Source of the DNA: Caecitellus pseudoparvulus
Lineage: Eukaryota > Protista > Bigyra: Bicosoecida
Reading direction: 5' to 3'
NCBI GenBank assembly: GCA_965644315.1
Contig: CBFFRQ010000067.1
Span: 806,001-870,000, forward strand
DNA length: 64,000 nucleotides
Shown: positions 36,165 to 59,282 of the stretch, piece after piece
How positions within the stretch are numbered: position 1 is the stretch's first letter
Layout of the letters: each line of letters opens with the position of its first letter
Translations under genes and position numbers: made by a program
Notes under the pieces: model-generated
What the model was told of the DNA's origin: nothing
Seen by the model: the letters and a program-made list of their open reading frames with translations, nothing else
Database searches by the model: none

Positions 36165-38096
36165 GGTTCCCTCGTGTTGGTGCGTTGTGCGTGGCAATCG
36201 AAATGCATTGAACTGGGCCCGCCTCGAGGCCGTCCCCTCCCCCCTCTATGCCAGCGGCCACCAGGGCTCGCTGCATCTCTTGGGGGAGGGGACGCCTCCT
36301 TGCGGCACCCGCCAATCGAGAAAAAGAAAAAAAAAGGAAAGAGAGTGACGAGGCCGGCTAATGACTGGTTTTGTCATGCCCGGTCCTGCCGTCGTCTACT
36401 CTGCGTTGGGGCGGCGGGGGACAATTGTGCCACTAGCGTGGGACTGCCCGCCGCCCCTCCTGCCGGGAAACATGGTTGCCGGCTGGGGTGCCGGCAACCT
36501 CGGTTCCCTCGTGTTGGTGCGTTGTGCGTGGCAATCGAAATGCATTGAACTGGGCCCGCCTCGAGGCCGTCCCCTCCCCCCTCTATGCCAGCGGCCACCA
36601 GGGCTCGCTGCATCTCTTGGGGGAGGGGACGCCTCCTTGCGGCACCCGCCAATACTTTTCAATGCTTGCTTCCTCCCCTGGGTGTCATGGCCTCGTGCCA
36701 CAGCCTCGCCCCCTCCCCCCTGGGTGTAGTATCGTGCCCGGGTGGGGGAGCCAGCCGCCCAGCCCGCCGCGTGCTCCACCAAGACGTCGGGGGCCCGGCC
36801 TGTCCAGAACATATTGCCCCCGGGTCTCAGGTGGGCCAAGGACACGCCCGCTACAGCCTTCAGGATGCCTTGCAGGCTGAGCCACGCCCACCTTGGGAGC
36901 AGGCTTCCCCGCTTGTCCCGGGCCTGCTCCCGGAGGCGGTCGAAGGCCCCCGCCCACTCGGCCTGGCGCACCACCTGGATGTGGCGGTTTGCACTCAGGT
37001 GCGTTTTATCCGTGACCCTGGCCTCCACCCACTGCAGGGGGCCCGCCCGCCCGAAGTGCAACTCCTCCCATCGCAGGCCCCGGAGCTCTCCCGGCCTGCA
37101 CATGCCATGAAAGCCGATGTAGATAGCTGCGGCGGCAGTTGGGGCATGCCTCCCGAGGTGTGGCCCGTCCCATGCCCGCTTCATGGCCTCCATGACTTGT
37201 TCTTTGCTGATAGGGCGGCGGTGTTGCTCCCCTCTCCCTCGGTGGAGCCGGCGGATTGCCCGGCAGATGCTGCCGACTGTGAGCCCCAGCGGGGCTAGCG
37301 ACGGGATTGGCAGGCCCAGATACCTAAAACCACCGACCCATTGCGCCAGGATCTGCTTCGCCCGATGGGGGGCCCATCTGCCTGCGGCCACGCCGCCCGT
37401 TAAGATGCCCACCATGGTCCGCGCCCTGTCCCGGGGTGCTGGAGCGGCCCTGATCAGGCCAGCAACCGCGCGAACGTACTTGACCACCGTCCCCTTTGCC
37501 AGCCTATGTTGGTGAATCCTGCTGATCGGGGACGCGGGGATGGCCCTGATCATCTGCCAGAAGGTCTGCTTCCTTATCCAGAGTGTGTCGCGCGGACGGG
37601 TTCGCTTCGTGCCGTGCCCCCGTGGTGAGCCGCCTGCGCGATGAGGGGCACCGTCAGCGGGGAGGCGGAAAGCTCTGCCCGCAATGAGGGATCGCATGCG
37701 ATCTGCCCGGAATCCCTCGGGCACCTCCCGGAGGCGCCAAGCGGCCTCCATCTTACCAAAATCCTCAGAATCCGCCCACTTCAGCCAGTACTCGAACTCC
37801 TGCTCCGTTATGAGCGCCTTGGCTTGCTTGGCGGAGTTGACAGACATCATTTTGTCGTGGATGTCCTCCCAGCTTCCGCCCTCCGTGTCGCTGGAAGCTG
37901 GATCATCCGATGCCATCTCGAAAAAAAAGGAAAGAGAGTGACGAGGCCGGCTAATGACTGGTTTTGTCATGCCCGGTCCTGCCGTCGTCTACTCTGCGTT
38001 GGGGCGGCGGGGGACAATTGTGCCACTAGCGTGGGACTGCCCGCCGCCCCTCCTGCCGGGAAACATGGTTGCCGGCTGGGGTGCCGGCAACCTCGG
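36165..38096 (-). mobile_element. Non-autonomous Ngaro-type YR retroelement copy lacking the 3,889-nt GT-AG segment (apparent spliced retrocopy); A1 38096-37921, B1 36653-36502, A2 36503-36328, B2 36316-36165
   Basis: Reverse complement of 53456-53964 joined to 57854-59282. The length difference is fully explained by two homopolymers. GG core at both ends. Confidence 0.95.
36396..37916 (-). CDS. Gag N-terminus (109 aa) fused to tyrosine recombinase; C-terminus shifted by a short G-run
   Basis: MASDDPASS...KRTRPR|DTLWIRKQTFWQMIRA... with YR motifs GMCRPGEL, DKT, AHLRPGG, AGW and RYY. Confidence 0.85.
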   Translation of the reverse strand: MASDDPASSDTEGGSWEDIHDKMMSVNSAKQAKALITEQEFEYWLKWADSEDFGKMEAAWRLREVPEGFRADRMRSLIAGRAFRLPADGAPHRAGGSPRGHGTKRTRPRDTLWIRKQTFWQMIRAIPASPISRIHQHRLAKGTVVKYVRAVAGLIRAAPAPRDRARTMVGILTGGVAAGRWAPHRAKQILAQWVGGFRYLGLPIPSLAPLGLTVGSICRAIRRLHRGRGEQHRRPISKEQVMEAMKRAWDGPHLGRHAPTAAAAIYIGFHGMCRPGELRGLRWEELHFGRAGPLQWVEARVTDKTHLSANRHIQVVRQAEWAGAFDRLREQARDKRGSLLPRWAWLSLQGILKAVAGVSLAHLRPGGNMFWTGRAPDVLVEHAAGWAAGSPTRARYYTQGGGGEAVARGHDTQGRKQALKSIGGCRKEASPPPRDAASPGGRWHRGGRGRPRGGPSSMHFDCHAQRTNTREPRLPAPQPATMFPGRRGGGQSHASGTIVPRRPNAE

Positions 38097-39290
38097 ATGT
38101 GCATGCAGCGGATGAGGGTGGACCTGAGGCCGCCTTGCGAGAAGCGTGCGACTGGGGCCGCACAGACGTCGTGCGTGAGCTGCTGGGCCTGACTGGGGCG
38201 CGGGAAGTGGATGTGCACGTGGCGGCATTTGGCGGAGCTGAGGCCGCCTTCAGAGTGGCATGCGAGGGTGGCCACCTCGACATCGTTCGGGAGCTGCTGG
38301 GCCTGACGGGGGCGCGGGCAGTGGATGTGCATGCAGCGGATGAGTGTGGACCTGAGGCTGCCTTCCGAGAGGCATGCGCCAATGGCCATCTCGACGTTGT
38401 GCGTGAGCTGCTGGGCCTGACTGGGGCGCGGGAGGTGGATGTGCATGCGGTGGATGAGGAGGGGCCTGAGGCCGCCCTCCGAGCGGCATGCGCAGGCGGC
38501 CACCTCGACATCGTGCGTGAGCTGCTGGGCCTCACTGGACACCGAGCTACGTCCCATCAGACCAGACTCAAGATCGGAGTTGTTGCCGTGCAGCCCGCCA
38601 AGAAAGCCGTGTGGGCTGGCACCAGCACTCGGCAAGGACGGCGCGCCATGCTGCTGCTGCGAGCTGCCCGGGGCGCAAGAGGCAGCAGCACCTAGACGTT
38701 GACACTGGAGTGGTACCTCTCTGAGGGCAGGCCTCACGCTTGGAGTGCGAGGTGCAGCGGGCGGCTGCTCTCCAGAGTGCAATGCAAGGGGGGATGAGCT
38801 GCAGCGCTTGCGAGTGAGGCTGGCGCCGGCACGACGTAGCACCCTGAGACCTACGCGCAGTCTGCGGGTGCTGCTTGCCTCCACCCACGCTTGCCCTCCG
38901 GTGCCTGCCGTGGACTCGCACTCCTCACGGGTGGCACGTCAGCAGACCGCAAGGGGCGCCCGCCAGCCGGTCCAAGGGGGGCGCCCACCGCCTCACACGC
39001 TGCAGCAGCGACGCGCCCATGGCCTGCCAGCTCAGCACCAGTGCCGTGGCTGTGCATGGCGCCACGCCTTCCGCTTCCCTCACTCGGAGGAGGACCGTCA
39101 AAGGCGCGCCCGTCGGGGAAGGAGACGCGGCAGCATGGCTTGCCCCGACAGCGCCAGGGGATGCACCGCCCTTGTCAGGCGGTGTAGGGCTGGGGCTCGC
39201 AATACATTGCCGTGTTCTGCACTGTGGCACTCATGGTCAGGGGCTGTCAAGCTGCTGCTGAAGGCGCTTGTCACTGCTGCTACTTCTGGT

Positions 39291-42182: not shown

Positions 42183-42864
42183 GTTCGTTTCCCAGTGCTT
42201 GAGTCAAACACTACGTTGTCGGACGGCAGGGCGCGGAAGAATGACGAGTTGGGAGTTTCTTCGCTACCTTGGCGCCACGCTCCACGAAGTTACCACGCTG
42301 CGTCGACACTTGGCGGCAGCGGCGGCTTCTAGCTTTTCGGCGCTGCTTCGGACTGACGCGAGCACTTGCCCTGCACCCAGCTGCACCTTGCTTGGATAAA
42401 TGACGTGTGAACCTTTTGATGGTCACGCTCCTTGAGTTTAGCACGGTTCCAGCTCAGTTGTACTGATGAGATTGCCGGAGCTTGTGGAGTTTGGCGAAAA
42501 GCATGCCATTGATCTTGTAAGTGATGTCTGAATTTCCCAACCAGCCATAACCGCATCTCGCCCTTTCGTAAGTTTTTTCAACAGCCACATGCAAATGTAA
42601 ATTCGGACATTTCAATATTACCGGGCGTACTCCCATGCACACGTTCACACCCTGCAAAGTGCTCTCACACCGCAAACCCTCCTTTTTCCTCCGCGCCGCA
42701 GGCTGGGCGTGTTTGGCGCCAGCGCAACGGGCGGTGGCACTCCCTGAGCGACGGGACTTTGCCTGCGACACGACAGGCACAAGGGCTGTGTGGAGGACAG
42801 CAAATTGCTGGTTAATTCCACAAGCTTCCATCGACGCGAGGCCTTGTTGCCCCGTGCGGCGTGA

Positions 42865-45800
42865 ATGAGCAGCAACATGGCGTCGGCGGGAGGTGGTGCG
42901 GAATTTGGCCGTGCGAGCGGCGTCGAGGCTGAGCTGCGTTCTGCGCTGGAAGAGCGTGGGCGGGAGCTGGAGAAGAAGAACATGATCATGTCAAGGGCTA
43001 AGGCTGTGATCGAGTCGCTGCAGGTGCGTGTGTGCGCAAGGGCGGGGTCGGGCAGCCTGCGTTTCGCCGCCGTTTCGCGCCCCGACCAAAGTGCAAGATG
43101 CTGTGCAGCCCACGCTGCACCGCGATGCGCGCCTGCTCCCCTGCACAGGCTGACCTTGCAGCTGCTCGGGCAGATGCGAGGCTCGTGGCGGCTTCTTCGA
43201 GTGACTCGGGGGGGCAGCTGGAGGAAGCGCGTGCCGTCATCGGCGACCTGCGGGGGCAGGTGGCGCTGCTGCGGCAAGATGTGTCCCTGGCGCAGCAGGG
43301 TGAGGGCGCCGCCCGCGCGACGGCACGTGCCCTGGAGGAGCAGTTGTCCCAGGCGCTGCCTGCGGTGCAGCAGCTGGAGGATGCGCGGACGCGTGTGGCT
43401 GAGAGTCAAGCGACGGTGGAGGGGCTCAGTGCCGAGTGCAGTGCGTTACGCGGGCGAAACGGCGAGCTGGTGCAGGAGGTGGGGGACCTTACTGGTCAGT
43501 TGGAGACCACGCGATCTGAGCTCGCGACGACGCGCAAGGCTGCCGCGGAAGCTGAAGCCTCCCTTGCTGCAGCGCAGTCGGTGACGACGATGGAGGCTGA
43601 GACGATTTCTGCGTTGCGTGGAGAGTTGAAGAGCGCAGAAGCACGGGCGACGGCTGCGGAGGCGGCGGTGTCTTCGCTGAAAGGCGACGTCGCTCGTCTG
43701 GAGGCTGCGGCGGCGGGGTCGCAGTCGTCCCTCACCGCCGCATCCAGCGCAGCGAAGGAGCAAGCTGCACAGTGGGAGCAGCGGGAAGCGGCGTTGCTGG
43801 CACGGTGCCAGGCGCTTGTTGCGTCAGAGGGAGAAGCCACACAGCGCCTGGCAGCTGCCTCAGCGCGGGAAGCAGGTTTGCAGCGGCAGGTGGACGAGAT
43901 GGCAGAGGCGCTGTCGCGCAGCGAGCGGCGTGTGGCTGCTGCGGAGGGGCGTGAGAGTGACTTGGCCAGTGAGCTGGCCATGTGTCAGAGCCAGGTTAGG
44001 GAATTGGAGGCACTGGTGCAGGCAGCAGAGGAGGAGCAGGGTTCGTTGCGTGAACAGACACAGGAGCAGGTGGAGGCGGCGAAGCGGGCTGCTGCGCGGG
44101 AGAGGCGTGCGGCGGAGGAGGCTTTGCGTGCGGAATTTGAGGGGCGCCTGGAGGCGAGTCGCGATCGCGAAGCGGCGCTGGCAGAGCAGGTGCGGCACTG
44201 GCAGGAGCACGTGCGGTCCAAGTTGGCGCCGTTTGTGACGCCTCACGGCGGTGGTGGGCATGGTGGTGCGCTGGAGGATGGCGCCGTGTCGACACAGCGA
44301 GTTGGCTCCACTGGCCCAGGCACGCCGCGGGCTGCGCGGAGCACCGCTGCCTCCCGTGCGCGCAGCGTGGGGAAAAAAACGCCTGCAGAGTCCAGCAGCA
44401 CCGCCATGGTAGCGTCTGCAGGCGCTGGCACTTCGGCACCTGCGTTGGCCGAGTCACTGCAGGCGGAAGGCGCTGAGACATTGCGGGTGTTGCAGCAAGT
44501 TCCGCGCGTGCGTGAGTGGTTCACAGCGGCGGCGGACAGCTTGGAGGCGCAGATGCACGTGAAGATGCGGGCGATGGCGGCAGCATGCGAGGCTGTCGCG
44601 GCGCGGGTGGATGCGGCCACGGCCCAGCTGCCGGGCGCTCTAGCTGCAGTGCACATGAGTCAGGGTGAGCGGCAGCGTGCCGAGTCACGCGCCGAGCAGG
44701 CTGGTGCAGCCAAGGCAGTGCTGGCTGAGCAGCTGGCGTCGACGTCGCAGGCGTTGCAGCTGGCAGAGTTGGAGGCCAGTCGCGCGAAGGAGGAGCTGGT
44801 CGCAGCCACCGACCGACTGGGCGTGCTGGAGGAGAACAACCGCGTGTTGCTGCTGGAAGTGACGGAGAAACGGCAGGTGGCAGGGGTGTTGCAGGATGCA
44901 CTGGCTTCCCTGGACGCCGAGCGACGGGCTGTGCTGGGCGCGCTGTCGTCCCTGCGACAGCACGTGCACCGTATGGTGACGACGCACGGCAGCTTGATGT
45001 CGGGGGGTGGTCGCACGGGACGACCAGGGCGCGGCGCCGCCACCGCCACCGCCGACGCCGCGACGGCGACACAAGACGTCCTGTCCGCTCTGCACAGCCT
45101 GGAGGGCCACTTGGGGCGCCTGCCATCGGCGGAGGATATCACAGGAGCCACTGGCACGACGCCTGGCTACCCAAGTTCCGCAGGCTCCAAACCCGACGCA
45201 GCCACTGCTGCTGCCTATGTCAGTCAGGCAGCCACGCAGCTGGCGGGGCACCTGCCGTCACTCAGCTCGTACGTGGCACAGCTGGACCGCCACGTGGCCG
45301 AGACGTCGACCATCGTGTCCAGCACGTCGCACGTGACGACGGCACTGCAGAACGCGACCGCCTCCGTGGCCAGCGGCGGCGCGCCCCCCTCCCTCACCGG
45401 TGTGCTGCAGACACAGCAAAGCCTGCAACAAGCCCTCGTCGCCATTGCGACCAGCGTGCAGGCGCTGGCGGGCGACTTCAAGGCCTCTTTTGAACGCCTG
45501 CGGAACACCGTCGCGTTCGCAGCTGCACACGTCAGCGCCGGGAAGGCAGCGGCAGAGGCGGCGCCGTCGGCCCCCAGCACGCCAGGGGTGCAAGCTGCCC
45601 CCACACCCCAGCCTGCACAGACCATGCAGGCAAGTGCTGCGCAATTGCCTGCATGGACGGGCACCCTCCCACCCTCCAGCAGTGGGCTCGGCAGGGGCAC
45701 TTACGATGCGAGGTTGCCCCCGGCACCCCCCCTGCACACCCTCGACTTCAGCGGCGGTGGCGGAGCTTCAAGGACAGCCACATCCACGTCCTTCACTCCC

Positions 45801-45956
45801 CATGCCACGGCTGTGTCAGTGCCTTCAGCAGGCGGCACGTCATCAGCCGCCGCCAGCGCCAAGCTGTCAACTCTTCACGCCAGCATGATGGACCGTTTCA
45901 AACGCATCGGCTCAGAGTTGCAAGCCAGTGCTGCCCGGGTGGAGCGACTTGGGTGA
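42865..45956 (+). CDS. Long coiled-coil protein; exons 42865-43023 and 43149-45956
   Basis: Heptad-rich Ala/Glu/Arg sequence. Intron 43024-43148 (gtgcgt..cccctgcacag) joins ESLQ|ADLAAA in frame. Confidence 0.8.
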
Positions 45957-46049: not shown

Positions 46050-49000
46050 TTACCGCAGCGCGGCGGGGGACACAGGGGACGACGGCAGGGCGCTGGACCT
46101 GCGATGCAAATTGAACGACAGGGCAGAAACACTGCCCCTGGCTTTGCGGTGGGGGGCTGTTCCGCCGCGCGGCTTGGGGGAGTACTCGTCGGCGAACGAG
46201 TCTTCGCTGCGGGTCGCATGCTCCGACATGAGCAGGGAGATGCGGCGGTGGAAGTCCCGGCCTGTGTGGGCCGAGAAGGGCTTGGCTGTCGTGAGCATGG
46301 GGTTGCGGGCGGCTCGTGAGGGGATGTGCCGTGCCGTGCGCCCCGCCGCATTTGCGCTGCGGCGGACGGGGCTCAGGCGGCGTTTGGGCAGGTGGCCACG
46401 TGAGTGACTCAGTGAGGCTGAGCGGGGTATGCCCTCTCGGCTGGGGGAAGCAGGGGCACCTACACCGGTTGCGCTGGCGTGTGCGAATGCCGATGTCGTG
46501 GGTGTGCCTTGGTCGCTTTGCGACCTGCGCACCGCGCTTGGTCGCCGGTTGTGTGTGGGCGGAAAGGCAGAGTCCGAGGAGTCCGAGGAGTCGGAGTCAC
46601 TCTGCGCTGCAGCAAGGGCGAGCGGGCTGGACTGACTGTGCTGTGAGGCGGTGGTGGTGGTGGAGGGGGCACTGCCTGTGGCCAGCAGCGCCAGGTGGGG
46701 TGGTCGCATGGGCAGTGGGTCATCCCCCCGCAGGGACTGTGTCGGGGACTGCGACGCGCCGACTGACGAGGCGTCCGTGATGGTGGAGGTGCCGCCCTTG
46801 GCCCCAGCGGGCGCCAGGGCGAGGGTGCGGTGTGACAGGTACAAGTTGCGTTTGTGGGCGCCACGGCGCGAGGAGCCTTCCACTGAGTCCACACTCACGA
46901 CGTGTGTGCCGGTGGGGGGCGGTGTCCAAAACGGCGACCCCCGCTGAGGCAGCATGCGAGGCAGCAGCCCCAGCGCCAGCGTGTAGCCGACAGCCAGCCC
47001 CACGACGGCGAACAGTGCGACGATGTACCACGCGAGCGGCACGCCGGGGGTCGCGACTGCGACCACGGCAGTGACGCCTGCCAGGGCGCAGTCCAAGACG
47101 ACTCGCGTCGTCAGCACACGGTAAATGCTGGACTGTGGAATGAGCACAGTGGCGGGGAAGGGGGCTTGCCAGCCAAAGGTGTGCCGCCACGCTTGCCACT
47201 GCACGCGACCCGTCCACCACGTCGTGACTCCGGTGGCGAGCAGGACGTCTGCGACGAGGGCAGGGATGATGCCGTACACGTTGCGCGTGAGCAGGGACAG
47301 GACGACGAGGGAGCCGATGCGGGAGGACACTAGTAACGTGCGCATGGACCACGCTACAAAGGTGACAGCGTTGGTGATGCCGTTGGCACGGATGTCCAGG
47401 AACAGGACGTAGAACACAGTCAGGGAGAGGATGCTGAGGCCGATGCTGAGGTACTGCACGCCAGCCACCACTTCGGCTTGCGCGAGGGAGCTGAGAACAA
47501 TGAACACTTGCAGCAGCGCCTGGGGAGTGGACTCGAACACCACCTCGGCGAAGCGGTGGTCACGGATGCGGTCTTGGAACAGCGGCACGCGTGTTCCGAG
47601 AGAAACCAAGTCCAGAAAGAACTCCAGCGCAGGCAGTAGCTGCAGGAAAGCGACGGAGGCGATGGTGACCTTCTCGCAGCGCGTGCCGTCGGGAATGCGG
47701 CCCTTGTACGCGACGACGGCGGCCATGACTGCCGTGAAGGAGACACAGGACACGACGAGGGTGAAGAAGATGGGGTTGTTTTGGCGCACCATCTCCGCCG
47801 CCACGAGCACGTCGCTGATGACGTCCACGTAGTTCAGCACGACGGTGAGGAGGAGACTGCCCAGCAGGCCCCACGCTGTCAGGCGCTGCATGCGGATGAG
47901 GCGCCCAGACACCTCCATGTCGCACAGCGACCACGGCGACTCGCCCATGTCGTTCAGCAGGAAGGGGTTGGCGCCGCGGGCCATGAGCGTGGACACGGCG
48001 CCGGCCTCCGCAGCCCGTACCGCCGCGTGCAGGGGCGTGTCGCCATCCACGTCTGCAGCGTGCACGTCTGCGCCATGTGCAGTGATGAGCTTGGCGGTCA
48101 GGGGCGCCCCTGCCGCCGTGACGACGGCCCAATGCAAGGGCGTGCGACCGCGGGCGTCCCGGGCATTGATGCTGGCTGCGCCGCTGTGTGCTGACACCAG
48201 GTAGGCTACACAGGCGTACCGGCCCTGTGCAGCGGCCAGGTGGACAGGTGTGGCGCCTTGTGGGTCCCGTGCTGACGGGTTGGCGCCCACTCCCAGCAGG
48301 TACGTGAGGGTGTCGAAATTGCCCACCTCCGCGGCGATGTGCAGCGGCGTGCGACCTGCCGCGTCCACGGCGCTGGGGCGCAGGCCACACGCCGTCACGA
48401 GGGTCGGCACGATGGACCAGAAAGACGGCTCTGCAGCTGCCATGTGCAGGAGGGTGGCACCACCCCGAGATGGCGCGGCACCGCCCCCCCCTCCTCGAGG
48501 TAGGGCCTTTGCACCCAGCTGCAGGAGCACTTGCACCGCTTCGACGTGCTTGCCGCTCCAGGCGCGATGCAAGGCCGTACACCGCTGGGAGTCAGTACTG
48601 TTCAATCCAGCGCCCAGGCGGCTGACGAGGTGGTACAGCGTGCGAGCCTGCCCCGCTGAAGCTGCGACGTGCAGTGGCGTGGCGCCAGCGTCGTCCACCG
48701 CGTCGACGAAAGCCTTGCCTTGCCTCACAAGGACCTGCAAGACATCGTTGAAGCCCCGTTCGGCGGCCAGGTGCAGGGCTGTGGCACCCGTGTCGGTGTG
48801 GGCCAGCGGGTCGGCTTGTGGGAATGCCTCCAGCAGTGCGCGCAGTGCGATCGCCTTGCCGCCAGCAGCGGCAGCCATGAGGGGCGTCAGGCCGGCCGCG
48901 TTGCGGTCCTCGTCAGCCACGAGTTCAGGGTCCAAGGCAGCGCCTAGGGCTGCGATGACTCCGCTGGCCCCCGCCATGGCTGCGACGTGCAGGGCAGTGT

Positions 49001-49460
49001 TGCCAGCCATGTCCCGCTGCAGCGGCTCCGCGCCAGCGCCCAGTTGCAGCAGCATCTCCACAATGTCTGCGTGGCCCAGCGACGCTGCCAAGTGCAGCAG
49101 CGTGCTACCACCCTCTGGATCTGCAGCTCTGACGGCTGACGGGCTCTCCTGCAGGGCGTGGCGGAGGGCTGCCGGCTCGTTTGCGGCCACAGCTGCAGCC
49201 GCTGTGGCACTCCAATCCCCGCCCTGCTGGAGCATTGTACGGCTCTCAGAGGGCGACGGTGCCTTCTTGGGTGAGGTTTCGGGAAAGAAACGAGTGGAAA
49301 GGGAGCTAAGTAGGCCTTTCTTCCGCCCTGGGCTCCTGCTGGCCCGCGGCGAGCTTGCGTTTGGCGCTGCGGCGTTTTCGGCGGAGGGTGGCGCCGTGCT
49401 TGTAGGCGAGCGAGCGAGCGGCATTTCCGCCGCCTGTGCGGCGCTCTGCGGCACACTCAT
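46050..49460 (-). CDS. Ankyrin-repeat protein fused to an XK-related (Xkr-like) multi-TM domain
   Basis: About 12 canonical ankyrin repeats (GxTPLHxAA), then YVDVISDVLVA...AEVVFESTPQALLQ...LSIGLSILSL (ESxPQ motif of the XK family). Likely start MSVPQ at 49460. Confidence 0.8.
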   Translation of the reverse strand: MSVPQSAAQAAEMPLARSPTSTAPPSAENAAAPNASSPRASRSPGRKKGLLSSLSTRFFPETSPKKAPSPSESRTMLQQGGDWSATAAAAVAANEPAALRHALQESPSAVRAADPEGGSTLLHLAASLGHADIVEMLLQLGAGAEPLQRDMAGNTALHVAAMAGASGVIAALGAALDPELVADEDRNAAGLTPLMAAAAGGKAIALRALLEAFPQADPLAHTDTGATALHLAAERGFNDVLQVLVRQGKAFVDAVDDAGATPLHVAASAGQARTLYHLVSRLGAGLNSTDSQRCTALHRAWSGKHVEAVQVLLQLGAKALPRGGGGGAAPSRGGATLLHMAAAEPSFWSIVPTLVTACGLRPSAVDAAGRTPLHIAAEVGNFDTLTYLLGVGANPSARDPQGATPVHLAAAQGRYACVAYLVSAHSGAASINARDARGRTPLHWAVVTAAGAPLTAKLITAHGADVHAADVDGDTPLHAAVRAAEAGAVSTLMARGANPFLLNDMGESPWSLCDMEVSGRLIRMQRLTAWGLLGSLLLTVVLNYVDVISDVLVAAEMVRQNNPIFFTLVVSCVSFTAVMAAVVAYKGRIPDGTRCEKVTIASVAFLQLLPALEFFLDLVSLGTRVPLFQDRIRDHRFAEVVFESTPQALLQVFIVLSSLAQAEVVAGVQYLSIGLSILSLTVFYVLFLDIRANGITNAVTFVAWSMRTLLVSSRIGSLVVLSLLTRNVYGIIPALVADVLLATGVTTWWTGRVQWQAWRHTFGWQAPFPATVLIPQSSIYRVLTTRVVLDCALAGVTAVVAVATPGVPLAWYIVALFAVVGLAVGYTLALGLLPRMLPQRGSPFWTPPPTGTHVVSVDSVEGSSRRGAHKRNLYLSHRTLALAPAGAKGGTSTITDASSVGASQSPTQSLRGDDPLPMRPPHLALLATGSAPSTTTTASQHSQSSPLALAAAQSDSDSSDSSDSAFPPTHNRRPSAVRRSQSDQGTPTTSAFAHASATGVGAPASPSREGIPRSASLSHSRGHLPKRRLSPVRRSANAAGRTARHIPSRAARNPMLTTAKPFSAHTGRDFHRRISLLMSEHATRSEDSFADEYSPKPRGGTAPHRKARGSVSALSFNLHRRSSALPSSPVSPAALR

Positions 49461-50256
49461 TGTGAAGGAGGGCGGGCCTGTCTCGTTTCCACCTAGGGAA
49501 GTGGGGTCCACAGTGCAGGCGCCAGGCAGCGAGGGCGGGGGGCGCTGCTCTGTGCAAGGCGCCACAGCCGTGATTGAGTGTCCTGTGGGGCAGAAGGCAT
49601 GGGGCAGTGCAGGACACATGGGGAACAGGGACAGGAAGCGGCGCCGCCACGTGAAGGAATTCAACCCCTTCTCGCGTGGCATTGGTTCGTTCAGGCCCAA
49701 ACGTCCCACTGGCAGGCTGGGCGGCGGCGCAGCTGTCACCCTGCGCCGTCGCCGCGACGCAGCTGCAGCCGCACTGCCTCTCCCAGCCGCCAGGGACACA
49801 GTGTGGAAGCAGGGCTTCGAACAAGGCCACCCACCTTGCGCAAAGCAGTGACCTCCTTGCCAGAGGGGGGACCAACGCGGCGGTGCTGCGGTCACGACTG
49901 CCGCGCGGCAGATTCCTCTTGACAGCTGCTCCAGCCAAGTCTGGTGCTGGTGATGGTGGACGGCGGTGGACTTGAACCGTGCGCAGCGGGGCGAACGAGC
50001 AGTGGGTGCAGCGCAACGCGCCGGCAACCGGGAGGTGACTGGGAAGTCCCTATTTGCATTGTGTTTCAGCGGCTTCCTTTGTGGGAATGAGTGCTCGTGC
50101 GAGCGTGCACGCTGCACAGGGGACACTGGCTTGGCCGCGCCGCCACCTCTCCGCAGCGCAGTCAGGGCCGCCACTGGAGGGCGCAGGCCATGCAGTAGTA
50201 CCCTCGGACGACACACTCAGGGCGTCGCTCAGTGCAGGGCGCACTGGAGTCTCCCG

Positions 50257-51010
50257 TCAGCCAGAGCGTTTCGGGGGGGGCTGGTGCGTGCCTGCCGCTT
50301 CGCCCGGCGCCTGGCCACGTCGCACGTGCCGACCTTGCCTGCCCCGGCGCTTTCCACCAGCCTGTGGCTTGCTCTGGGGCGGAGGCGGGGCCTCAATGCC
50401 CAGCGCTGCAGCGCATTTGCGCAGCAAGCGCTTCAGCTGCCCGTTGCGCACCTTGCGGCACGCTGTCGCAACGTCCAGCCACGCCACATCCTCCGTCTCA
50501 TCTGACAGGGCGGCAGGGGTGCTGGCAGGGCACGTGCCCGTGAACCAGTGCACTGTCTTGTCATGCACCGCGCCTTCCTTGCGCCTGTACGTGTAGTGGA
50601 TGGTGTGCCTCCAATCGGGCAGCAGCGTCACCGCATCGGGCGGCACGCCTGACTCCTCGTGCAGCTCACGGAGGGCAGTGGCGCGCAGACTCGCGTCGCC
50701 TGGCTCGACATGCCCCTTGCAGCAGCCCCACATGTGGGTGAGGTTGCTCTTGATCAGCAGCACGTCCTGCGGGCGGTAGGTGAGGCGGCGTGGTGACAAG
50801 TCGCCGCCAGTCCTGTCGCTGCGTGGCACGCACAGTGCCACGGAACAAGACCACCCCACACGACACGTGGTGATGCACACCCTCCTCATCGGTCCACCTG
50901 CCCAGCGGCATGTCTGCATGGTCCTCTGCGGGAAGCTGGGCCGCGCCTGTGGCGTCCTGGCCCAGGCAAGGTGCGGTAATTGCTTCGCCGCTCGCCGCCA
51001 CCGCAGCCAT
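50257..51010 (-). CDS. Nudix hydrolase, Ap4A-hydrolase (NUDT2)-like; exons 51010-50834 and 50766-50257
   Basis: SCGVVLFRGT|DVLLIK..WGCCKGHVEPGDASLRATALRELHEESG (Nudix box) and KTVHWF. 67-nt intron gtgcgt..ccgcag. Confidence 0.85.
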
Positions 51011-51138
51011 GGCGTAGCGTGGGCGGTGTGGAGTGTGCAACGCACACGCATTGCATTTCAAGTACATGAGTTTGGATACTCCCCGACAAAGAATGTGACC
51101 AAGGCAGCTGACTGTGGCCGCCCCACACCTTACACGCC

Positions 51139-53457
51139 TCACGAGCTGCGCGCAGTCATCAGCGGGTTGGGTGTGTCCAGGGCTGCCACAGTCGGCGCCC
51201 GGGGCGGAGCAGCGGGGGCGCGACGAGGAGGGCCCGGAGGTTTGCCTGTCTGGGCGGGGCTGGTCGCCCCGGACTGGCTCTGGCGACTCACGCGGCGGGA
51301 GGAGCGCTGTCCCAGCAGCCGCTTCACGGAGCTGTTGCGCCCGGATCGACTAGGCAGCATGGCGGCACGCTTGGCATCTGCAGGCGTCTGCATGACGCTG
51401 GCAAGGAGGCTGCTCATGCGCTGCGTCGTGGGGGACGCCCCACTCCCTCCGCGCATGGACCGGCCGGCGAGGCTGGCGCGGGGCGCCCTGCCGTCCAGAC
51501 CACCCGGTCGCTTGGCAAGGGAGGGGCCCCGCACTGCGATGGAGGCACGTCGCACGGCGACCTTGACACGGGCCTGCGACTGGTTCACGGCGCGGTTGAA
51601 GCGTTGGGACTGGCGCTTGACAAGGAAGAACAGGCACACAAACAGGAACAGCGCGTTGCACACTGTGAGGAAGACACTGATGGGGACGGGGTCGATGGGG
51701 GCGGTGGCAGGCTCCTCTGCCGCAGCTTGCAGCAACACACCCCCGCACAGCGTCAGCACTGACAAGTGCAAACTGGCCGCTTCCAGGTGGTTCAAGCGCC
51801 GCAGCACGAAGGGCTGCAGGGAACTGGACAGACCCAGCGCCGCCGTGAGGGTGACGGCGGCGAAGGCCACCTGCGGCAGGAGGCCAAAGGGTCGCAGAAC
51901 GATGAGCAGCGTGGCGAGGGCTGCCTTGCGAGCCATGACCACCACTTCATACCCGAAAGCCGTTTTTGTGTACCCAAGGTACGTGAATCCCAGTGTGGCG
52001 ACGACCTTGGGGGAGGAAAACAGCTTGGACCGCTGCCAACGCAGGGCGATGTGCAGGGCGAGCGGGAAACCGATCAAGAACAGCACGGAAGCCGGAACAC
52101 CAATGCCCAGACGCCAGTGTGCCGTGGAGGCATCACATGGCGTGTCAGGGTCAGCTGTGAGCACCGAGTGCCCAGCAACCGTCTCACACGAGAACAGCTG
52201 CGTGGTGGCTCGAATAAGGCCGGTGTAGAGGAGGAACGCCGTCACGAAGAAGAAGAGAAGGAAGCGGCGGCGGGCAGCACGGAAGTCCATGCGACCGACC
52301 ACCACCAGCACTGCCAGGACGGTCAGAACGCAGCCCAGGAACGCGAGGGGGAAGGCAAACGTGACGGCGGTTTTGATTTGGAAGGCGGTCCAATCGCCAC
52401 GCTCGGCAGACTCCCGCGCACATTCAGGCGACAGCACTGCCGTGCTGGCAGAGGAAGCAATGTCCGAGACAGTCATGAGGGACGCCAGCGGGTCGGGCCA
52501 CGCCAGCTGGAACTGCAGCATGAGGGAGGTCTGCTGCAGGTGGTTCAGGAGAATTTTCTGCAGGCCGCCTGCCTCGTACTGCAGGTCAGTGAGGGTCATG
52601 GTGTTCATGTAGAAGCGAGCCAAGAAGCAGATGAGGGCGCTGCCGCCCACCACCACCAACATGAGCACGGCCAGCGCGGCCGCCCTGCCTGAGGAACACG
52701 GCTCACAGCGCTCGCTCGTGCCGGCTCGTCCGTAGCCGAGTGAGCAGCTGGAGCAACGCAGGCCTGTGTGCCCAGTGGCGCACCCCTCTGCGTGCGTTGA
52801 GATGGGGGCACTGGACGGCCCGCCTAGCAAGAATGCCTCCGGGGTGGCAACTGCCATGGACGCGTTCACTGCCTGGCTGTCGTGGCGGTAGAGCGGCGAC
52901 ATGGCGGTTGGGGTGCAGCGCCAACCGCCGTTGCACTGCTCCCACAAGGCGCCCAACCACGCAGGCACTGGCAGGGGGGCGTGTCTGAACTCCGGACACG
53001 CCTCGGGCAGACTGCAGGGCAAGAAGGCCAGACCAGCCTCCGACCACGGCACACGGTAGAAGCCAGCCGCGTTGCGCATGCCCTCCCACGGCAAGCCATC
53101 ACACAGCGCCCCAACAGGGCATGGCTGGCAGAGAACGGCGCTCCACATGGGCGGCTCAGCCAGCAGGTGGTACGTGGTCAGCATGTCTGACGGCCCACAC
53201 GTCGGCAGTACGGGGGATGGGTACCATGCAGGCGGTCCGTCCATGCGCCGGTCGCCCAGGGCCGTGCCGGCAGCCACACCGACTGACACCGCCCCGGGCA
53301 GGCCATGCTCCACGCTGAGTTGCAGGAATGGCCCCGCGGGAATCGCATCTCGAGGGCGCGTACCGCAGGCTGCCGGCAGGGTGGCCAGCGTCTGCACGCG
53401 TGCCTCGACACCTGCGTCACCTTGCAGAGTGAAGGTCGCGCGGCCTTCAGCACTACC
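51139..53457 (-). pseudogene. 3' part of a giant surface receptor-like gene (Cys-rich domain + ~7 TM + basic tail), separated from its 5' part by the Ngaro insertion
   Basis: CQPCPVGALCDG, CATGHTGLRCSSCSLGYGR, KILLNHLQQ and LFSCETV plus TM helices. Rejoins 59282 in frame as NATVR-G-SAEGR. Confidence 0.85.
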
Positions 53458-53631
53458 GAGGTTGCCGGCACCCCAGCCGGCAACCATGTTTCCCGGCAGG
53501 AGGGGCGGCGGGCAGTCCCACGCTAGTGGCACAATTGTCCCCCGCCGCCCCAACGCAGAGTAGACGACGGCAGGACCGGGCATGACAAAACCAGTCATTA
53601 GCCGGCCTCGTCACTCTCTTTCCTTTTTTTT
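53456..53631 (+). repeat. Split direct repeat A1 (176 bp)
   Basis: Matches 58944-59119 and, inverted, 37921-38096 and 36328-36503. Confidence 0.97.
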
Positions 53632-53635
53632 CGAG

Positions 53636-55718
53636 ATGGCATCGGATGATCCAGCTTCCAGCGACACGGAGGGCGGAAGCTGGGAGGACATCCACGACAA
53701 AATGATGTCTGTCAACTCCGCCAAGCAAGCCAAGGCGCTCATAACGGAGCAGGAGTTCGAGTACTGGCTGAAGTGGGCGGATTCTGAGGATTTTTGGTAA
53801 GATGGAGGCCGCTTGGCGCCTCCGGGAGGTGCCCGAGGGATTCCGGGCAGATCGCATGCGATCCCTCATTGCGGGCAGAGCTTTCCGCCTCCCCGCTGAC
53901 GGTGCCCCTCATCGCGCAGGCGGCTCACCACGGGGGCACGGCACGAAGCGAACCCGTCCGCGCGGTGCGAGCAGTGGCACGCCCTACGGCCCGCACCTAC
54001 CCCCGCGCCCGACCCAGCCGGACGCAGTCGCAGGCGACCTCCCGCAAGATCCCGCCACAGTGCTTACGTGGTTCCTGCAGAGGGGAGCGACGGTGCCGAG
54101 CGAGGACGTCGCCGTGCAGCTGCAGTTCTACGTGGGCTTGGCAACGGAGGAGACATCGCCGTACGCCCTCTCCGCTTGGCCTCCACGGCGCTTCGCCGCA
54201 TGGTGCAGACTCAACGGTATTCCCCCCGACCTCACCCCCGACGACATCGTGATGCATTTGCAGCGGGTCCTGGAGGCCGCGCTGGCGGGCGACGACGACT
54301 TTGGCGACGACGATGCCGGCGCCCCGTTCTTTCCCGTTTTCCCGGGCACCACACCGGATGCCGCCCGGTTACAGCCCCGTGCGGCGGCCCCGGGTCACCC
54401 CCGGCCTCCAAGAGGCACAGGGCGGCCTATAGCCCGCAGCCCCCCTCCCCCGTGGGGCGGCGGAGCCTCGCCGGCAGTCCACCCCGAAGGCGGGTCGGCT
54501 GTTTTCGGTCACATGGGGGAGAACAGCGGTCGGTCGTCGCCAGCCGACGAGGTACTGGTCACTGTAGGCGCGCTGCGGGTCATTGGGCCGACCGCACACC
54601 CCTCGTCGGCGGTGGCCCGGGACCGCCTGTCAGCCTTGGGGGCAGTTTTCGCTGCGGGGACCACAGACGCCTTGACCACGGTGGCTGTCGAGATGGCTGA
54701 GGCTGCTGCACGAGAGGTGCCCGCAGCAACGGGCCCAGTGCCGTCAGGTACGTTCCTGTCCCGCCAGCTCCCCCCCCACTCGCCCCGCGTGCCCGCTCCC
54801 GGCGACCCGTCCTGGCTCACAGCCCCCGGCGATGAGGTAGCCCCGCCGTCCGCGTCGGTCATGATGGACGACGCTATGGACGTAGTGACTGCTGTACGCC
54901 TGGTGCAAGGGAGGGTGGAAGTTACAGTTGACCCAACCCATCTAGTGGCAGTAACTGGGGCGGGTGCCCTGTCGGCATGCCACATGCTGGGCAACCGTGG
55001 GGGCGCTTGGTGGCTTGCTGCGATGACCAGGGACTTGCTGACGGCGCCTTCCGACGACCTCCACCGCTCCCTCCGAGCGTTCTGGTGGAAGTGGGCGTCC
55101 GAGGTGCCCGCCCTGGCAGACCAGCGGGGCCTGTGCCGAGCCATGGCGTGCGCACTCCTGATCACAATCGCAGTGCGGGCCGTGGCGCAGACCGCCGCTG
55201 CGTTGCCCGAAGGCCAGCGCAGGCGATGGGCCCAGCTGACGTGGGCCTCCTGGGTGGCCACGTTCCGCACTAACGCCACCATTGTCATGATGGCGTCGGC
55301 GACGGGGCAAGCACTGGTGGCCAGCTCGCTGGCGCGCGAGGCATGGGCGGCCGGGGCCGCCGCCACACCGATGCCAGGTGCGGGGGGCGGCCCGGCGCAA
55401 ACCCCCGCTCGTGGCCCTCCCGCGGGGCTGTACCGGCAGGACGACCCGAGCACATTCGTGTGGTGCCCCGGGTGCGTCGGATCCGACCGGCGGCGCCGGT
55501 CGCTGGCATCCTGCCCACGCCTGGCCCAGCATGTGGCCCACCTGCGCCGGACCCACACAGTCGGAGGTAAGCCCGCAGAACTTACCCAGGCGCAGGCAGT
55601 GGCCATGCTGGTGCGCCAGTGGGAGCGGAAGGTGGCATCCAAGGGACGTGACTTCCAGCGGCGCATGCAGCCCCGCGCTGTCACCACGGCCATGGTGGAG
55701 GCAGCTCTCAGCCTCTAG
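53636..55718 (+). CDS. Retroelement ORF1 (Gag-like); one extra T at 53791-53795 shifts the frame in this copy as sequenced
   Basis: The MASDD start reads straight into MEAAWRLRE in the second copy (T4) but not here (T5). A C-terminal CPGC...HLRRTH motif is present. Confidence 0.8.
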
Positions 55719-57938
55719 GAGGTGGGCCGGAGCGCGGTGGTGAGAGCGACCACGGGGTACCGGGCCGTGCCCGTGGAGTGGAGGGCTGCCGCCCCGCTCT
55801 CGACAGACCACCGCGCCATGGCCGTGCTCATCGAATCAATGGTCCAGCAGCTGCATGGGGACCGTTGTTGGACTCCACCGGGGCTCTTCGAGGACATCTT
55901 GCGTGGGGGCTTGGACTGGGGCCCCCACCCCGTGGTCTCATACTGGGGTTGCCAGGAGGCCCACGCTGACGTGTGTCCCGCATGCGGCGAGACCACTTCC
56001 AGATTACGGCAGCTTGAGCGGTGCGCAGCCATGCGACTGCTCACCGTGGTCACGCTGCGCGGGTGGGACCCCGCTTGGCTGCTGTTCCGCCGCCCCCCGG
56101 CAGCGGCATCCCCGTCCTCGGCATACGTGCTGCAGCCGCACGACGAGCGGGCGGGGGCAGCGGCCTATGACGCCTTCGCGGCTGCGCGCGTGCTGCAGCC
56201 GGTCACCCCCCAGCAGCTGCAGCAGCACCGAAAGATGGGGGGGCCAGCCGCTTCTGCCTTCGTTGTCACGACATGGGCCCCCCAGCCGGGCGTCAGCGAC
56301 GAAGCTCTGCGACAGTGGGCTGCTGCGAACCCAGGCGAGGCGGTGCAGGCCGCCAGCTCTTCCCGCGCGCCCGCCCGCCCGAGCCGCCTGTTCCGGGCCA
56401 AGCAGCGGGTGGTGTACGATCTGGCAGCCGTCAACCAGGCCTCAGTGAGCCCCCCATTCCACTACCCCACGCTGGAGAGCTGGGCGCTGCGCCTCCCGCC
56501 GAACTCGGACTGTGTTGTCCTGGACGTGGAAGCAGGGTACACGGCCATCCCCATCGCTCCGTCGGGCGCCGGACTGTTCACCATGCTCGCCCAGGGCAGG
56601 CCAGCCTTCCGCATGCTTCGGATGGCCTTCGGGTACAGCCCGGCCGGGGCCATTTTCTGCTTTTTTTCTGGACTTCTGGGCGCCAAGATCGAAGCGGCGT
56701 TCCCAGCAGGGCATGTGGTTGTGTACGTAGACGACGTCGGGCTTGGGGGAGCTACGTTGGGGCCACGGCCATCGATCGTGCCCAAGATAACTCAACTGTT
56801 CGAGGACGTGGGCTTCCGGGTGTCGCGCAAGAAGACGCAAGGGCCACAGCGCGTCGTTCAGTACTTGGGGATGGTGGTCAGGTGTGCCCCGTGTGGGGTG
56901 TACCTTGAGTGTCCTCAAGCCAAACGAACTCAGCTGCGGTGGCAGCTGGCCGCGGTCCTTAATCGCCTCGGCGCTTGCTCCACCATCCCCAAGCGCGTTT
57001 TCGCCGCGGTCACAGGGCGCTTGCACGGCCTGTCGGCCGTGGTGCCCCACGCAAAACAAACGCTGTCGCTCTTGTACGACACCATGCGCACACACAAGTA
57101 CCGCGTCGGCCCCCCCGGCGCTCTCGTGCCTGTCCCCCCGGCGTCGCACGGGGCCCTGCGGACCCTCCTTGAGGCCCTCGGTGGGCCGTTATCGACGGGC
57201 CCGATGCGCCCGCTCTCCCCACTGTCAAGCAGGTGGCGCGCCGCCCTCTTTGGCTCGTGCGACGCGTCGGGGGAAGGCGGGCTGGGGGCAACAGTGTCGA
57301 GGTGGGCAGGGCCAGGAGAACGCACAGACTCCGCTTGGTACGCGTCCATGCGCATCCCCGGCACAGCCCCGGGCGAGGAGCTCGTGGGAGCCTCCACGAT
57401 GCTGGAGCTGTACGCAATCGCCTTGGCTATGGCAATGGCGCGGCATGTTTTTCCCGAGCCGGGGCCGCTGCTGCTATGCCTAGCTGCGGACAGCCAGGCA
57501 GCGGTGGCGCTGGCGCGACGAGGGTACAGCAAGCACAGCCGTGAACTCACGCGCGTCTGCGGGGTCCTCGAGCGGGTTTCCCGCGTTTTGGACGTCCACT
57601 TGGCGCCTCGGTGGATCCCGAGGAGCCTGAATTGGCGGGCGGACGCCCTCAGCCACCCCGAAAGGGTGGATAGCAGCACACCGGCAGCGCTCGGCCTCCC
57701 GCCAGGGCAACCAGCCGAGCTGGAGGTATCAGCAGGGGGAAGCAGCGCCGCTGAGCGGTGGCATGATGTGTCCCTAGACGTAGGGCCGTCGGGAAAGGCC
57801 GGGGCGGGCACCGCGTGGATTCACTCAGCTCAACTCTCCGTCGCCCTGCACAGACACACTCTGGATAAGGAAGCAGACCTTCTGGCAGATGATCAGGGCC
57901 ATCCCCGCGTCCCCGATCAGCAGGATTCACCAACATAG
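55719..57938 (+). CDS. Retroelement ORF2: reverse transcriptase + RNase H, same frame as ORF1 after a single TAG
   Basis: RT motifs RVVYDLAAVN, LDVEAGY, MAFGYSPA, YVDD and YLG. RNase H motifs CDASGEGGLG, LELYAI, ADSQAAV and WIPRSLNWRADALS. Confidence 0.95.
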   Translation, partial: EVGRSAVVRATTGYRAVPVEWRAAAPLSTDHRAMAVLIESMVQQLHGDRCWTPPGLFEDILRGGLDWGPHPVVSYWGCQEAHADVCPACGETTSRLRQLERCAAMRLLTVVTLRGWDPAWLLFRRPPAAASPSSAYVLQPHDERAGAAAYDAFAAARVLQPVTPQQLQQHRKMGGPAASAFVVTTWAPQPGVSDEALRQWAAANPGEAVQAASSSRAPARPSRLFRAKQRVVYDLAAVNQASVSPPFHYPTLESWALRLPPNSDCVVLDVEAGYTAIPIAPSGAGLFTMLAQGRPAFRMLRMAFGYSPAGAIFCFFSGLLGAKIEAAFPAGHVVVYVDDVGLGGATLGPRPSIVPKITQLFEDVGFRVSRKKTQGPQRVVQYLGMVVRCAPCGVYLECPQAKRTQLRWQLAAVLNRLGACSTIPKRVFAAVTGRLHGLSAVVPHAKQTLSLLYDTMRTHKYRVGPPGALVPVPPASHGALRTLLEALGGPLSTGPMRPLSPLSSRWRAALFGSCDASGEGGLGATVSRWAGPGERTDSAWYASMRIPGTAPGEELVGASTMLELYAIALAMAMARHVFPEPGPLLLCLAADSQAAVALARRGYSKHSRELTRVCGVLERVSRVLDVHLAPRWIPRSLNWRADALSHPERVDSSTPAALGLPPGQPAELEVSAGGSSAAERWHDVSLDVGPSGKAGAGTAWIHSAQLSVALHRHTLDKEADLLADDQGHPRVPDQQDSPT

Positions 57939-58788
57939 GCTGGCAAAGGGGACGGTGGTCAAGTACGTTCGCGCGGTTGCTGGCCTGATCAGGGCCGCTC
58001 CAGCACCCCGGGACAGGGCGCGGACCATGGTGGGCATCTTAACGGGCGGCGTGGCCGCAGGCAGATGGGCCCCCCATCGGGCGAAGCAGATCCTGGCGCA
58101 ATGGGTCGGTGGTTTTAGGTATCTGGGCCTGCCAATCCCGTCGCTAGCCCCGCTGGGGCTCACAGTCGGCAGCATCTGCCGGGCAATCCGCCGGCTCCAC
58201 CGAGGGAGAGGGGAGCAACACCGCCGCCCTATCAGCAAAGAACAAGTCATGGAGGCCATGAAGCGGGCATGGGACGGGCCACACCTCGGGAGGCATGCCC
58301 CAACTGCCGCCGCAGCTATCTACATCGGCTTTCATGGCATGTGCAGGCCGGGAGAGCTCCGGGGCCTGCGATGGGAGGAGTTGCACTTCGGGCGGGCGGG
58401 CCCCCTGCAGTGGGTGGAGGCCAGGGTCACGGATAAAACGCACCTGAGTGCAAACCGCCACATCCAGGTGGTGCGCCAGGCCGAGTGGGCGGGGGCCTTC
58501 GACCGCCTCCGGGAGCAGGCCCGGGACAAGCGGGGAAGCCTGCTCCCAAGGTGGGCGTGGCTCAGCCTGCAAGGCATCCTGAAGGCTGTAGCGGGCGTGT
58601 CCTTGGCCCACCTGAGACCCGGGGGCAATATGTTCTGGACAGGCCGGGCCCCCGACGTCTTGGTGGAGCACGCGGCGGGCTGGGCGGCTGGCTCCCCCAC
58701 CCGGGCACGATACTACACCCAGGGGGGGGGGGAGGGGGCGAGGCTGTGGCACGAGGCCATGACACCCAGGGGAGGAAGCAAGCATTGA
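57854..58788 (+). CDS. Retroelement ORF3: tyrosine recombinase (3' exon of the inferred spliced mRNA; first internal ATG at 57889)
   Basis: Catalytic R (GMCRPGEL), K (DKT), HxR (HLR), W (AGW) and Y (RYY). Overlaps the ORF2 end in the +1 frame and stops just before B1. Confidence 0.93.
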
Positions 58789-58793
58789 AAAGT

Positions 58794-59282
58794 ATTGGCG
58801 GGTGCCGCAAGGAGGCGTCCCCTCCCCCAAGAGATGCAGCGAGCCCTGGTGGCCGCTGGCATAGAGGGGGGAGGGGACGGCCTCGAGGCGGGCCCAGTTC
58901 AATGCATTTCGATTGCCACGCACAACGCACCAACACGAGGGAACCGAGGTTGCCGGCACCCCAGCCGGCAACCATGTTTCCCGGCAGGAGGGGCGGCGGG
59001 CAGTCCCACGCTAGTGGCACAATTGTCCCCCGCCGCCCCAACGCAGAGTAGACGACGGCAGGACCGGGCATGACAAAACCAGTCATTAGCCGGCCTCGTC
59101 ACTCTCTTTCCTTTTTTTTTCTTTTTCTCGATTGGCGGGTGCCGCAAGGAGGCGTCCCCTCCCCCAAGAGATGCAGCGAGCCCTGGTGGCCGCTGGCATA
59201 GAGGGGGGAGGGGACGGCCTCGAGGCGGGCCCAGTTCAATGCATTTCGATTGCCACGCACAACGCACCAACACGAGGGAACC
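58794..59282 (+). repeat. B1-A2-B2 terminal block (B = 152 bp, A = 176 bp)
   Basis: Direct comparison. The B1/A2 junction GAGGGAA-CC-GAGGTT reproduces the joined element ends. Confidence 0.97.

Follow-up and report, generated by a model that had tools for sequence, protein, structure and literature searches.

A Ngaro-like tyrosine recombinase retrotransposon of Caecitellus pseudoparvulus with a family-conserved candidate intron, and a short copy that may derive from a spliced RNA

The locus described here raises the question of how a tyrosine recombinase (YR) retrotransposon expresses its recombinase, and whether a shortened copy of the element carries a record of the answer. The window, that is, the whole stretch of DNA that was analysed, comprises 64,000 nucleotides (nt) of Caecitellus pseudoparvulus (contig CBFFRQ010000067.1 of assembly GCA_965644315.1, positions 806,001 to 870,000 of the forward strand) and contains a full-length Ngaro-like YR retrotransposon together with a short copy of it that lacks the reverse transcriptase (RT). 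The best reading overall, which we consider probable on the comparative sequence evidence given below, is that the YR is made from a spliced RNA, as a fusion to the N-terminal part of the first open reading frame (ORF1), and that the short copy is a retrocopy of an alternatively spliced RNA. The conserved donor and acceptor pair would then offer a concrete, testable answer to how YR retrotransposons express their recombinase, and a new protein species, the ORF1(N)-YR fusion, is predicted.

The features of the full copy are as follows (coordinates are those of the window; a slash within a donor or a peptide marks the point of joining).

53456-59282, plus strand: full-length YR retrotransposon with split direct repeats in the order A1...B1-A2-B2
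53455-53631, plus strand: repeat A1, 100% identical to A2
53636-55718, plus strand: ORF1, gag-like, ending in TAG; the longest uninterrupted listed ORF is 53802-55718
53965-53970, plus strand: upstream donor of the short copy, gcg/GTGCGA, phase 1, score 5/9
53965-57853, plus strand: 3,889-nt segment that the short copy lacks
54748-54753, plus strand: family-conserved donor-like motif, cag/GTACGT, phase 1, ORF1 codon 316
54748-57853, plus strand: candidate family-conserved intron, 3,106 nt, phases computed
55716-55718, plus strand: in-frame TAG at the ORF1/ORF2 boundary, a single stop
55722-57938, plus strand: ORF2, reverse transcriptase, 738 amino acids (aa), with RVT_1 at residues 219-385 and a conserved C-terminal part
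57815-57853, plus strand: acceptor-like region with branch-like TTCAC/CTCAA, a 75% pyrimidine tract and CAG, phase 1
57889-58788, plus strand: YR ORF, counted from its first ATG, with the R..K..R..W..Y pattern; the frame is open from 57784
58794-58945, plus strand: repeat B1, 100% identical to B2
58943-59119, plus strand: repeat A2, overlapping B1 by 2-3 nt (..ACC)
59131-59282, plus strand: repeat B2

The acceptor-like region lies 35 nt upstream of the ATG of the YR ORF, and the YR ORF, which has an ATG in the window element, overlaps ORF2 by 50 nt. Apart from the full copy and the short copy, self-BLAST detected no further copies or fragments of the element within the window. The short copy is made up as follows.

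36165-38096, minus strand: short copy, 1,932 nt, without RT, junction at 37589/37588
37921-38096, minus strand: repeat A1 of the short copy
36502-36653, minus strand: repeat B1 of the short copy
36328-36504, minus strand: repeat A2 of the short copy
36165-36316, minus strand: repeat B2 of the short copy
36396-37916, minus strand: fused ORF of the short copy, consisting of 109 ORF1 codons, a split codon and then YR

In self-BLAST, the short copy is collinear with 53456-59282 on the plus strand apart from the missing 53965-57853: its bases 1-1425 correspond to 59282-57853, and its bases 1425-1932 to 53964-53456. The respective identities of 99.65% and 99.8% reflect gaps only: the copies do not mismatch anywhere and differ in length at two places, by 1 nt and by 5 nt, both of which lie in a homopolymer or G+C-only tandem context and may be either real or assembly errors. 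The missing segment begins with GTGCGA and ends with CCCTGCACAG, and one base (G) is shared between the two sides of the junction. The initial annotation had described the short copy as the full element minus exactly this segment, with all four split repeats intact, and self-BLAST bears this out, each A and B pair being 100% identical. The junction is in frame (...KRTRPR/DTLWIRK), also as first reported; the fused protein, put at about 420 aa, is in fact longer, namely 506 aa from the ATG at 37916 and 524 aa from an upstream ATG. The 5-nt difference shifts the frame in the last part of the short-copy YR ORF relative to the full copy and to the database proteins P0001 and P0002, and the catalytic motifs are still in frame. 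In ORF1, in turn, it is the full copy that is frameshifted once with respect to the short copy, and the N-terminus of the short copy looks like those of the relatives. Internal deletions placed at random in a simulation could be represented as GT..AG segments in 0.65% of the trials, and showed GTRNG together with a pyrimidine-rich YAG in 2e-5 of the trials. Derivation of the long copy from the short one by insertion was rejected, given that ORF1 reads through the donor and that the relatives are all of the ORF1-RT-YR form.

The family to which the element belongs is rare, with 14 YR relatives among 1.84 billion representatives; the two word-indexed protein searches that gave any matches gave two each, and no relatives were found in viral and prokaryotic genome collections. 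A metagenome scan yielded 16 loci that represent about ten families, including the window element. The set of families used here consists of the window element, six whole elements (L002, L004, L005, L007, L011 and L013) and three partial ones (L003, L008 and L009), and the comparisons of the donor and of the TAG codon were made on the seven whole elements, the window element among them. All relatives have the same ORF1-RT-YR order, and L007 shares the repeat layout as well; YR is 25-35% identical to that of the window element, ORF1 identity over the families is 17-45%, and the ORF1 sequences of relatives align with that of the window element at 17-22%. The short contigs L003, L008, L009 and L014-L016 were considered as possible short forms and rejected, because they contain the ORF2 end and/or an unspliced acceptor region, or are truncated. 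Some contigs (L010 versus L011, L006/L007, L012/L013) are mutual circular permutations or end in the element's own repeats, as expected from tandem or circular forms or from assemblies that collapse the split repeats.

The evidence that carries our reading begins with the acceptor. In all ten families, a C/T-rich tract ending in CAG precedes the first conserved peptide of YR (..W[IL]..), and the G of this CAG is the first base of a YR-frame codon (phase 1), again in 10 of 10. In the window element, the CAG ends at 57853, which is the 3' breakpoint of the short copy, exact to the base. The acceptor is separated from the conserved W of the first YR peptide by 6-7 codons in most families, and by 3-4 in the window element and L002. 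Ranked by pyrimidine content among all YAG sites, a comparison made for seven families, the tract falls within the top 0.5-2.8% in six of them, and a YTNAY motif is found 11-39 nt upstream of the acceptor in nine of the ten families. The translated sequence upstream of the acceptor is not conserved. In L004, L011 and L013, YR homology begins before the first ATG of its frame is reached, and L009 has no ATG; furthermore, the YR frame of L004 and L011 opens only past the end of ORF2. Given the lack of a suitable ATG and of an overlap with ORF2, independent initiation and frameshifting fail in those families. Splicing would explain YR expression in all families.

The matching donor was sought by scoring every GT against MAG/GTRAGT (maximum score, 9). 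In each of the seven elements, the best plus-strand GT is CAG/GTAAGT (four elements), GTACGT (two) or GTGAGT (one), is located in phase 1 about half-way through ORF1, and occupies the same column of the ORF1 alignment in 7 of 7. Synonymous positions around this donor are fixed to the splice consensus in all seven, with NCA as the preceding codon, GGT for the glycine and NNG as the next codon; multiplied over these fixed positions, the elements' own codon frequencies give 4e-12. In the window element, the conserved donor is at 54748, is near-perfect and is the best-scoring GT of the plus strand. As donor and acceptor are both in phase 1, simple arithmetic predicts an in-frame fusion. The segment 54748-57853 has the attributes of an intron, with GT..AG ends, an extended 5' consensus, a branch-like motif and a pyrimidine tract, as well as a position and phase common to the relatives, and its predicted excision would leave only the N-terminal half of ORF1 and hardly any of ORF2.

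The conserved donor sits 783 nt downstream of 53965, where the segment missing from the short copy begins. Because donor 54748 is conserved in the family and 53965 is weak and not conserved, the regular intron of the element is most likely 54748-57853, and the short copy reflects the use of an alternative or cryptic donor. Thus, of the GT/AG pair singled out in the initial annotation, the acceptor is conserved in 10 of 10 families but the donor is not; likewise, its proposal that YR is expressed from a spliced mRNA gains comparative support from the acceptor, the donor and their phases, but not in the form in which 53965 is the regular donor.

That the host splices is shown by two introns of a protein kinase gene, each confirmed exon by exon.

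21899-21972, plus strand: host intron of the protein kinase gene, 74 nt, GTGCGT...ACAG
22190-22272, plus strand: second host intron of the same gene, GTGAGT...ACAG

The consecutive exons match positions 9-52, 54-125 and 128-263 of the Pfam profile Pkinase. The ACAG ends of these introns resemble the acceptor of the element, and, as the initial annotation had noted, the 10-mer at this acceptor recurs unchanged where a putative host intron ends at 43148. Of the host donors that it had listed, GTGCGT is present at 21899 and 43024, and the first of these belongs to a verified intron, whereas the sites at 21068 and 50833 are candidate GTGCG sequences on the minus strand only. The four host introns seen are 74-125 nt long, and their donors score 6-9. 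The protein kinase gene (22210-24279, plus strand) contains at least three short introns. The dynein heavy chain (6666-21068, minus strand) is encoded by one unbroken ORF of 4,800 codons, which implies that the host genome is poor in introns. The host is an intron-poor eukaryote with a flagellum and a high G+C content, which in the window is 66.6%.

A second conserved feature concerns the boundary between ORF1 and ORF2. In each of the seven whole elements, the two share a frame, and the only stop codon between them is one TAG with G or C as the next base.

TAG positions: window element, 55716-55718; L002, 1809; L004, 2145; L005, 2045; L007, 2233; L011, 2549; L013, 2369

As this arrangement is kept in 7 of 7 families, the TAG is probably a programmed readthrough stop that yields an ORF1-RT fusion, rather than a break in the gene. 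The conserved UAG would be a second recoding feature of the element, beside splicing.

The two copies also share the structure of their insertion sites. The short copy is inserted in an array of repeats of the host.

35739-38538: host array of 114-nt repeats split by the short copy, with halves 35739-36166 and 38095-38538

Paralogous unsplit arrays have GG once at the insertion point, and the short copy has CC at both ends, in the orientation of the element (38095-38096 and 36165-36166). The full copy has CC at both ends too (53456-53457 and 59281-59282), and the joint of B1 and A2 contains CC once. This pattern is compatible with recombination over an overlap of 2 nt, or with a duplication of 2 nt. 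A long minus-strand ORF of the host, encoding a protein with a TIG domain, is interrupted by the full copy, and the two halves of this ORF (59283-62177 and 51139-53454) are mutually in frame. With identical termini and the same CC overlap, both copies appear to have been inserted by one type of reaction, at sites independent of each other.

From these observations we infer splicing, a fusion protein and reverse transcription in trans, in the following succession. The full-length RNA would be translated into ORF1 and, by readthrough of UAG, into the ORF1-RT fusion. The YR would have no dependable start codon of its own; it would be expressed from a spliced RNA that joins the phase-1 donor in ORF1 (54748) to the phase-1 acceptor (57853), as a fusion with the N-terminal part of ORF1. 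Had the same acceptor been joined instead to 53965, the weaker donor upstream, the resulting RNA would have kept both ends of the element, and could have been copied by the RT of a full-length element, acting in trans, and then fixed in the genome. The outcome would be a 1.9-kb recombinase-only, non-autonomous copy with normal termini. Among YR elements, there is published evidence both of RT that acts in trans and of non-autonomous derivatives (PMC7192593, PMC6681497, PMC9940879).

Exon 1 of either splice form would include 53636-53964 (37590-37916 in the short copy), which ends in a basic cluster, ..KRTRPR. The position of this cluster is common to all relatives (KRAR.., KRRR.., KRKR..). A role in nuclear import or in the binding of nucleic acids is possible, and both fusion isoforms would retain the cluster. 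A protein search found no database proteins that cover the exon-1 part of the fused ORF.

Several points weigh against this reading. Each of the two copies carries one frame-changing length difference, and neither is demonstrably intact. The short copy is the only one known, within the window; an exact search of viral and prokaryotic genome collections, which are unlikely to include the host, did not find a second copy with the same junction, and no copy spliced at the conserved donor 54748 was seen. The donor of the short copy, 53965, scores 5/9, which places it 26th among the 284 GT sites of the element and below all four host donors, and it is not conserved, a GT at the homologous codon beside the basic cluster being present only in L004 among the six relatives. 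The consensus against which the donors were scored may not be the splice rule of the hosts of the metagenome relatives. The element's candidate introns, at 3.1-3.9 kb, are far longer than the four host introns (74-125 nt). Finally, there are database relatives in which a single frame encompasses ORF2 and YR, or all three ORFs, such that splicing may not be the only route to YR.

These one-frame proteins are P0007 (1,696 aa), P0012 (1,008 aa) and P0020 (464 aa), which encompass ORF1+ORF2+YR or ORF2+YR as a single ORF. Before YR, all three carry an ..A-V/A-D.. signature, the peptide that a GCAG in the acceptor's phase would give, and the motif of the donor column, ..SGTFF..H, is present in P0007.

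Four other explanations have to be considered. Although unlikely, the first retains splicing in the form put forward in the initial annotation, with 53965-57853 as the regular intron and the 109-codon ORF1-YR fusion as the normal recombinase. Its junction is the sole one actually recorded in DNA, and its donor is in phase 1 and directly follows the basic cluster that is positionally shared with the relatives, one of which, L004, has GT at the homologous codon. The low score and rank of this donor, the lack of a conserved GT in this column in five of the six relatives, and the near-perfect donor kept in 7 of 7 elements 783 nt downstream all argue that the regular donor is elsewhere.

The second explanation, which we regard as quite improbable, concerns the way in which the spliced sequence came to lie at 36165-38096. 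An older full-length copy at this site might have lost the segment by recombination with complementary DNA (cDNA) of a spliced RNA, and would then have inherited its termini and the target overlap from the earlier full-length insertion. The same sequence would be expected, and the window fits both routes, but cDNA-mediated loss requires one more event than the insertion of a retrocopy.

A third possibility, to which we assign only a slight chance, is that YR is expressed without any splicing, by frameshifting, reinitiation or non-AUG initiation, and that the conserved motifs serve another purpose, for example, U1 binding against premature polyadenylation, or some other cis signal. This would agree with the literature, where YR ORFs are described only as overlapping or frameshifted (PMC3783388, PMC9210276, PMC6681497), with the overlap and the ATG of the YR ORF in the window element, and with the relatives in which ORF2 and YR share a frame. 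It does not account for L004 and L011, in which YR neither overlaps ORF2 nor has an ATG at the start of its homology, nor for the shared phase 1 of donor and acceptor in all families, nor for the short copy, which records use of the acceptor.

Last, it is very improbable that a DNA deletion or an RT template switch at the 1-nt microhomology removed the 3,889 nt by chance, with coincidental GT..AG ends and reading frame: YR families often include non-autonomous derivatives with internal deletions (SIRE/VIPER, PMC6681497; TOC1, PMC9940879), the 5' end is only a weak donor and one base is shared at the junction, but the 3' end coincides with a site that is set independently by conservation in ten families (about 1-2 chances in 5,162 positions), the combined signals arose in 2e-5 of the simulated deletions, the fusion is in frame and the whole YR region is kept.

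Production of YR from a spliced RNA, with the short copy as a retrocopy of an alternatively spliced form, thus remains our preferred reading. Under this reading, the short copy would document such splicing at the DNA level for the first time in the YR class of elements, and would exemplify one way in which recombinase-only non-autonomous elements arise.

The surroundings of the two copies include several other host genes. A tandem gene family occupies window positions 24000-38600 in at least five units of about 2.69 kb, each with an array of 114-nt (38-codon) repeats; the last array, which hosts the short copy, is about twice as long. On the minus strand, the genes neighbouring the full copy encode an ankyrin-repeat protein (46050-50216) and the TIG-domain protein (59283-62177) interrupted by the full copy.

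The identity of the element rests on its proteins and its repeats. By its residues, profile matches and a fold search, the third ORF is a tyrosine recombinase. The invariant residues of YR are present as R153, K183, R243, W265 and Y276; the YR profile matches Cre with an E value of 0.013, and one relative matches Phage_integrase at 2.3e-4, with no Pfam YR match for the window protein itself. A fold search with the YR model, which is of moderate quality (predicted local distance difference test score, 66; template modelling (TM) value, only 0.37), gave Cre, Tre, Xer, IntI and lambda Int as all of its top matches, with a best E value of 4e-5. In ORF2, RVT_1 passes the Pfam cut-off (E value, 1.7e-7), and the ORF2 products of two relatives match it at 3e-15 and 2e-13; beyond RVT_1, nothing in Pfam matched ORF2 even at E values up to 1. 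No Pfam domain was found above the threshold in ORF1, and none of the Pfam matches to ORF1 or ORF2 is a protease or integrase domain.

Judged by its structure, namely the repeats and gene order, the element is a Ngaro-like YR retrotransposon. Ngaro-like elements of the order DIRS, as defined previously (PMC13465315, PMC6681497), have the same split direct repeats A1...B1-A2-B2 and the same order of a gag-like ORF1, RT and YR. No methyltransferase, protease or DDE integrase was detected in the window element with Pfam. A DIRS1-like identity, which calls for inverted terminal repeats and an internal complementary region, does not fit: in self-comparison, all repeats of the full copy are direct, and no inverted repeats of at least 40 nt are present. 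PAT-like elements combine split direct repeats, as seen here, with a methyltransferase; no such domain was detected in ORF2 with Pfam, the coverage of which possibly lacks the DIRS methyltransferase. In contrast to the Ngaro descriptions found in the literature, the window element has a conserved candidate intron and probable UAG readthrough, and its family is very sparsely sampled. No mention of splicing for YR expression was found in the YR-element literature searched, a search that excluded Goodwin and Poulter 2004 and Poulter and Butler 2015, where Ngaro introns may appear.

A broader conclusion, which we consider decidedly doubtful, would be that a clade of Ngaro-like elements follows a retrovirus-like two-RNA programme, with ORF1-RT made by UAG readthrough and ORF1(N)-YR by way of the conserved intron, and in which spliced RNAs that retain their ends are also copied into the genome and found recombinase-only elements with full terminal repeats. 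If such a programme exists, these elements would form a natural bridge from YR retrotransposons to Crypton-like transposons.

Retroviral env mRNA is a spliced subgenomic RNA. Spliced subgenomic RNAs have likewise been described for long terminal repeat (LTR) retroelements, including the shGAG RNA of Ty1/Copia elements and the gag RNA of BARE (PMC8892269, PMC3735527). In these systems, as would be the case here, one transcript serves as the genome and, after partial splicing, as the mRNA for a subset of the proteins, and the intron is long relative to host introns. The window element belongs to a different class, being a YR element without LTRs. Moreover, splicing in LTR retroelements enriches Gag or gives Env, whereas splicing of the window element would bypass RT and link the N-terminal part of ORF1 to the recombinase.

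Genomic copies that record the splicing of a retrotransposon's own RNA are known as the SpIREs of human L1 (PMC5860796), which are usually defective and need proteins from other copies, acting in trans. As a genomic splice record, the short copy would be of the same kind, as an exact GT..AG segment is missing and the hallmarks of insertion are kept at another site. The SpIREs of L1, however, are spliced within the 5' untranslated region or ORF1 and are regarded as accidents, whereas the acceptor of the window element is conserved, and the short copy keeps an enzyme gene and all terminal repeats. A further comparison is with SIRE of VIPER and with TOC1, both of which are short, have the same termini as an autonomous YR retrotransposon and depend on its enzymes (PMC6681497, PMC9940879). 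The short copy would be alike in this regard, and differs from both in having splice-site breakpoints and a retained open YR gene, neither of which has been reported for SIRE or TOC1.

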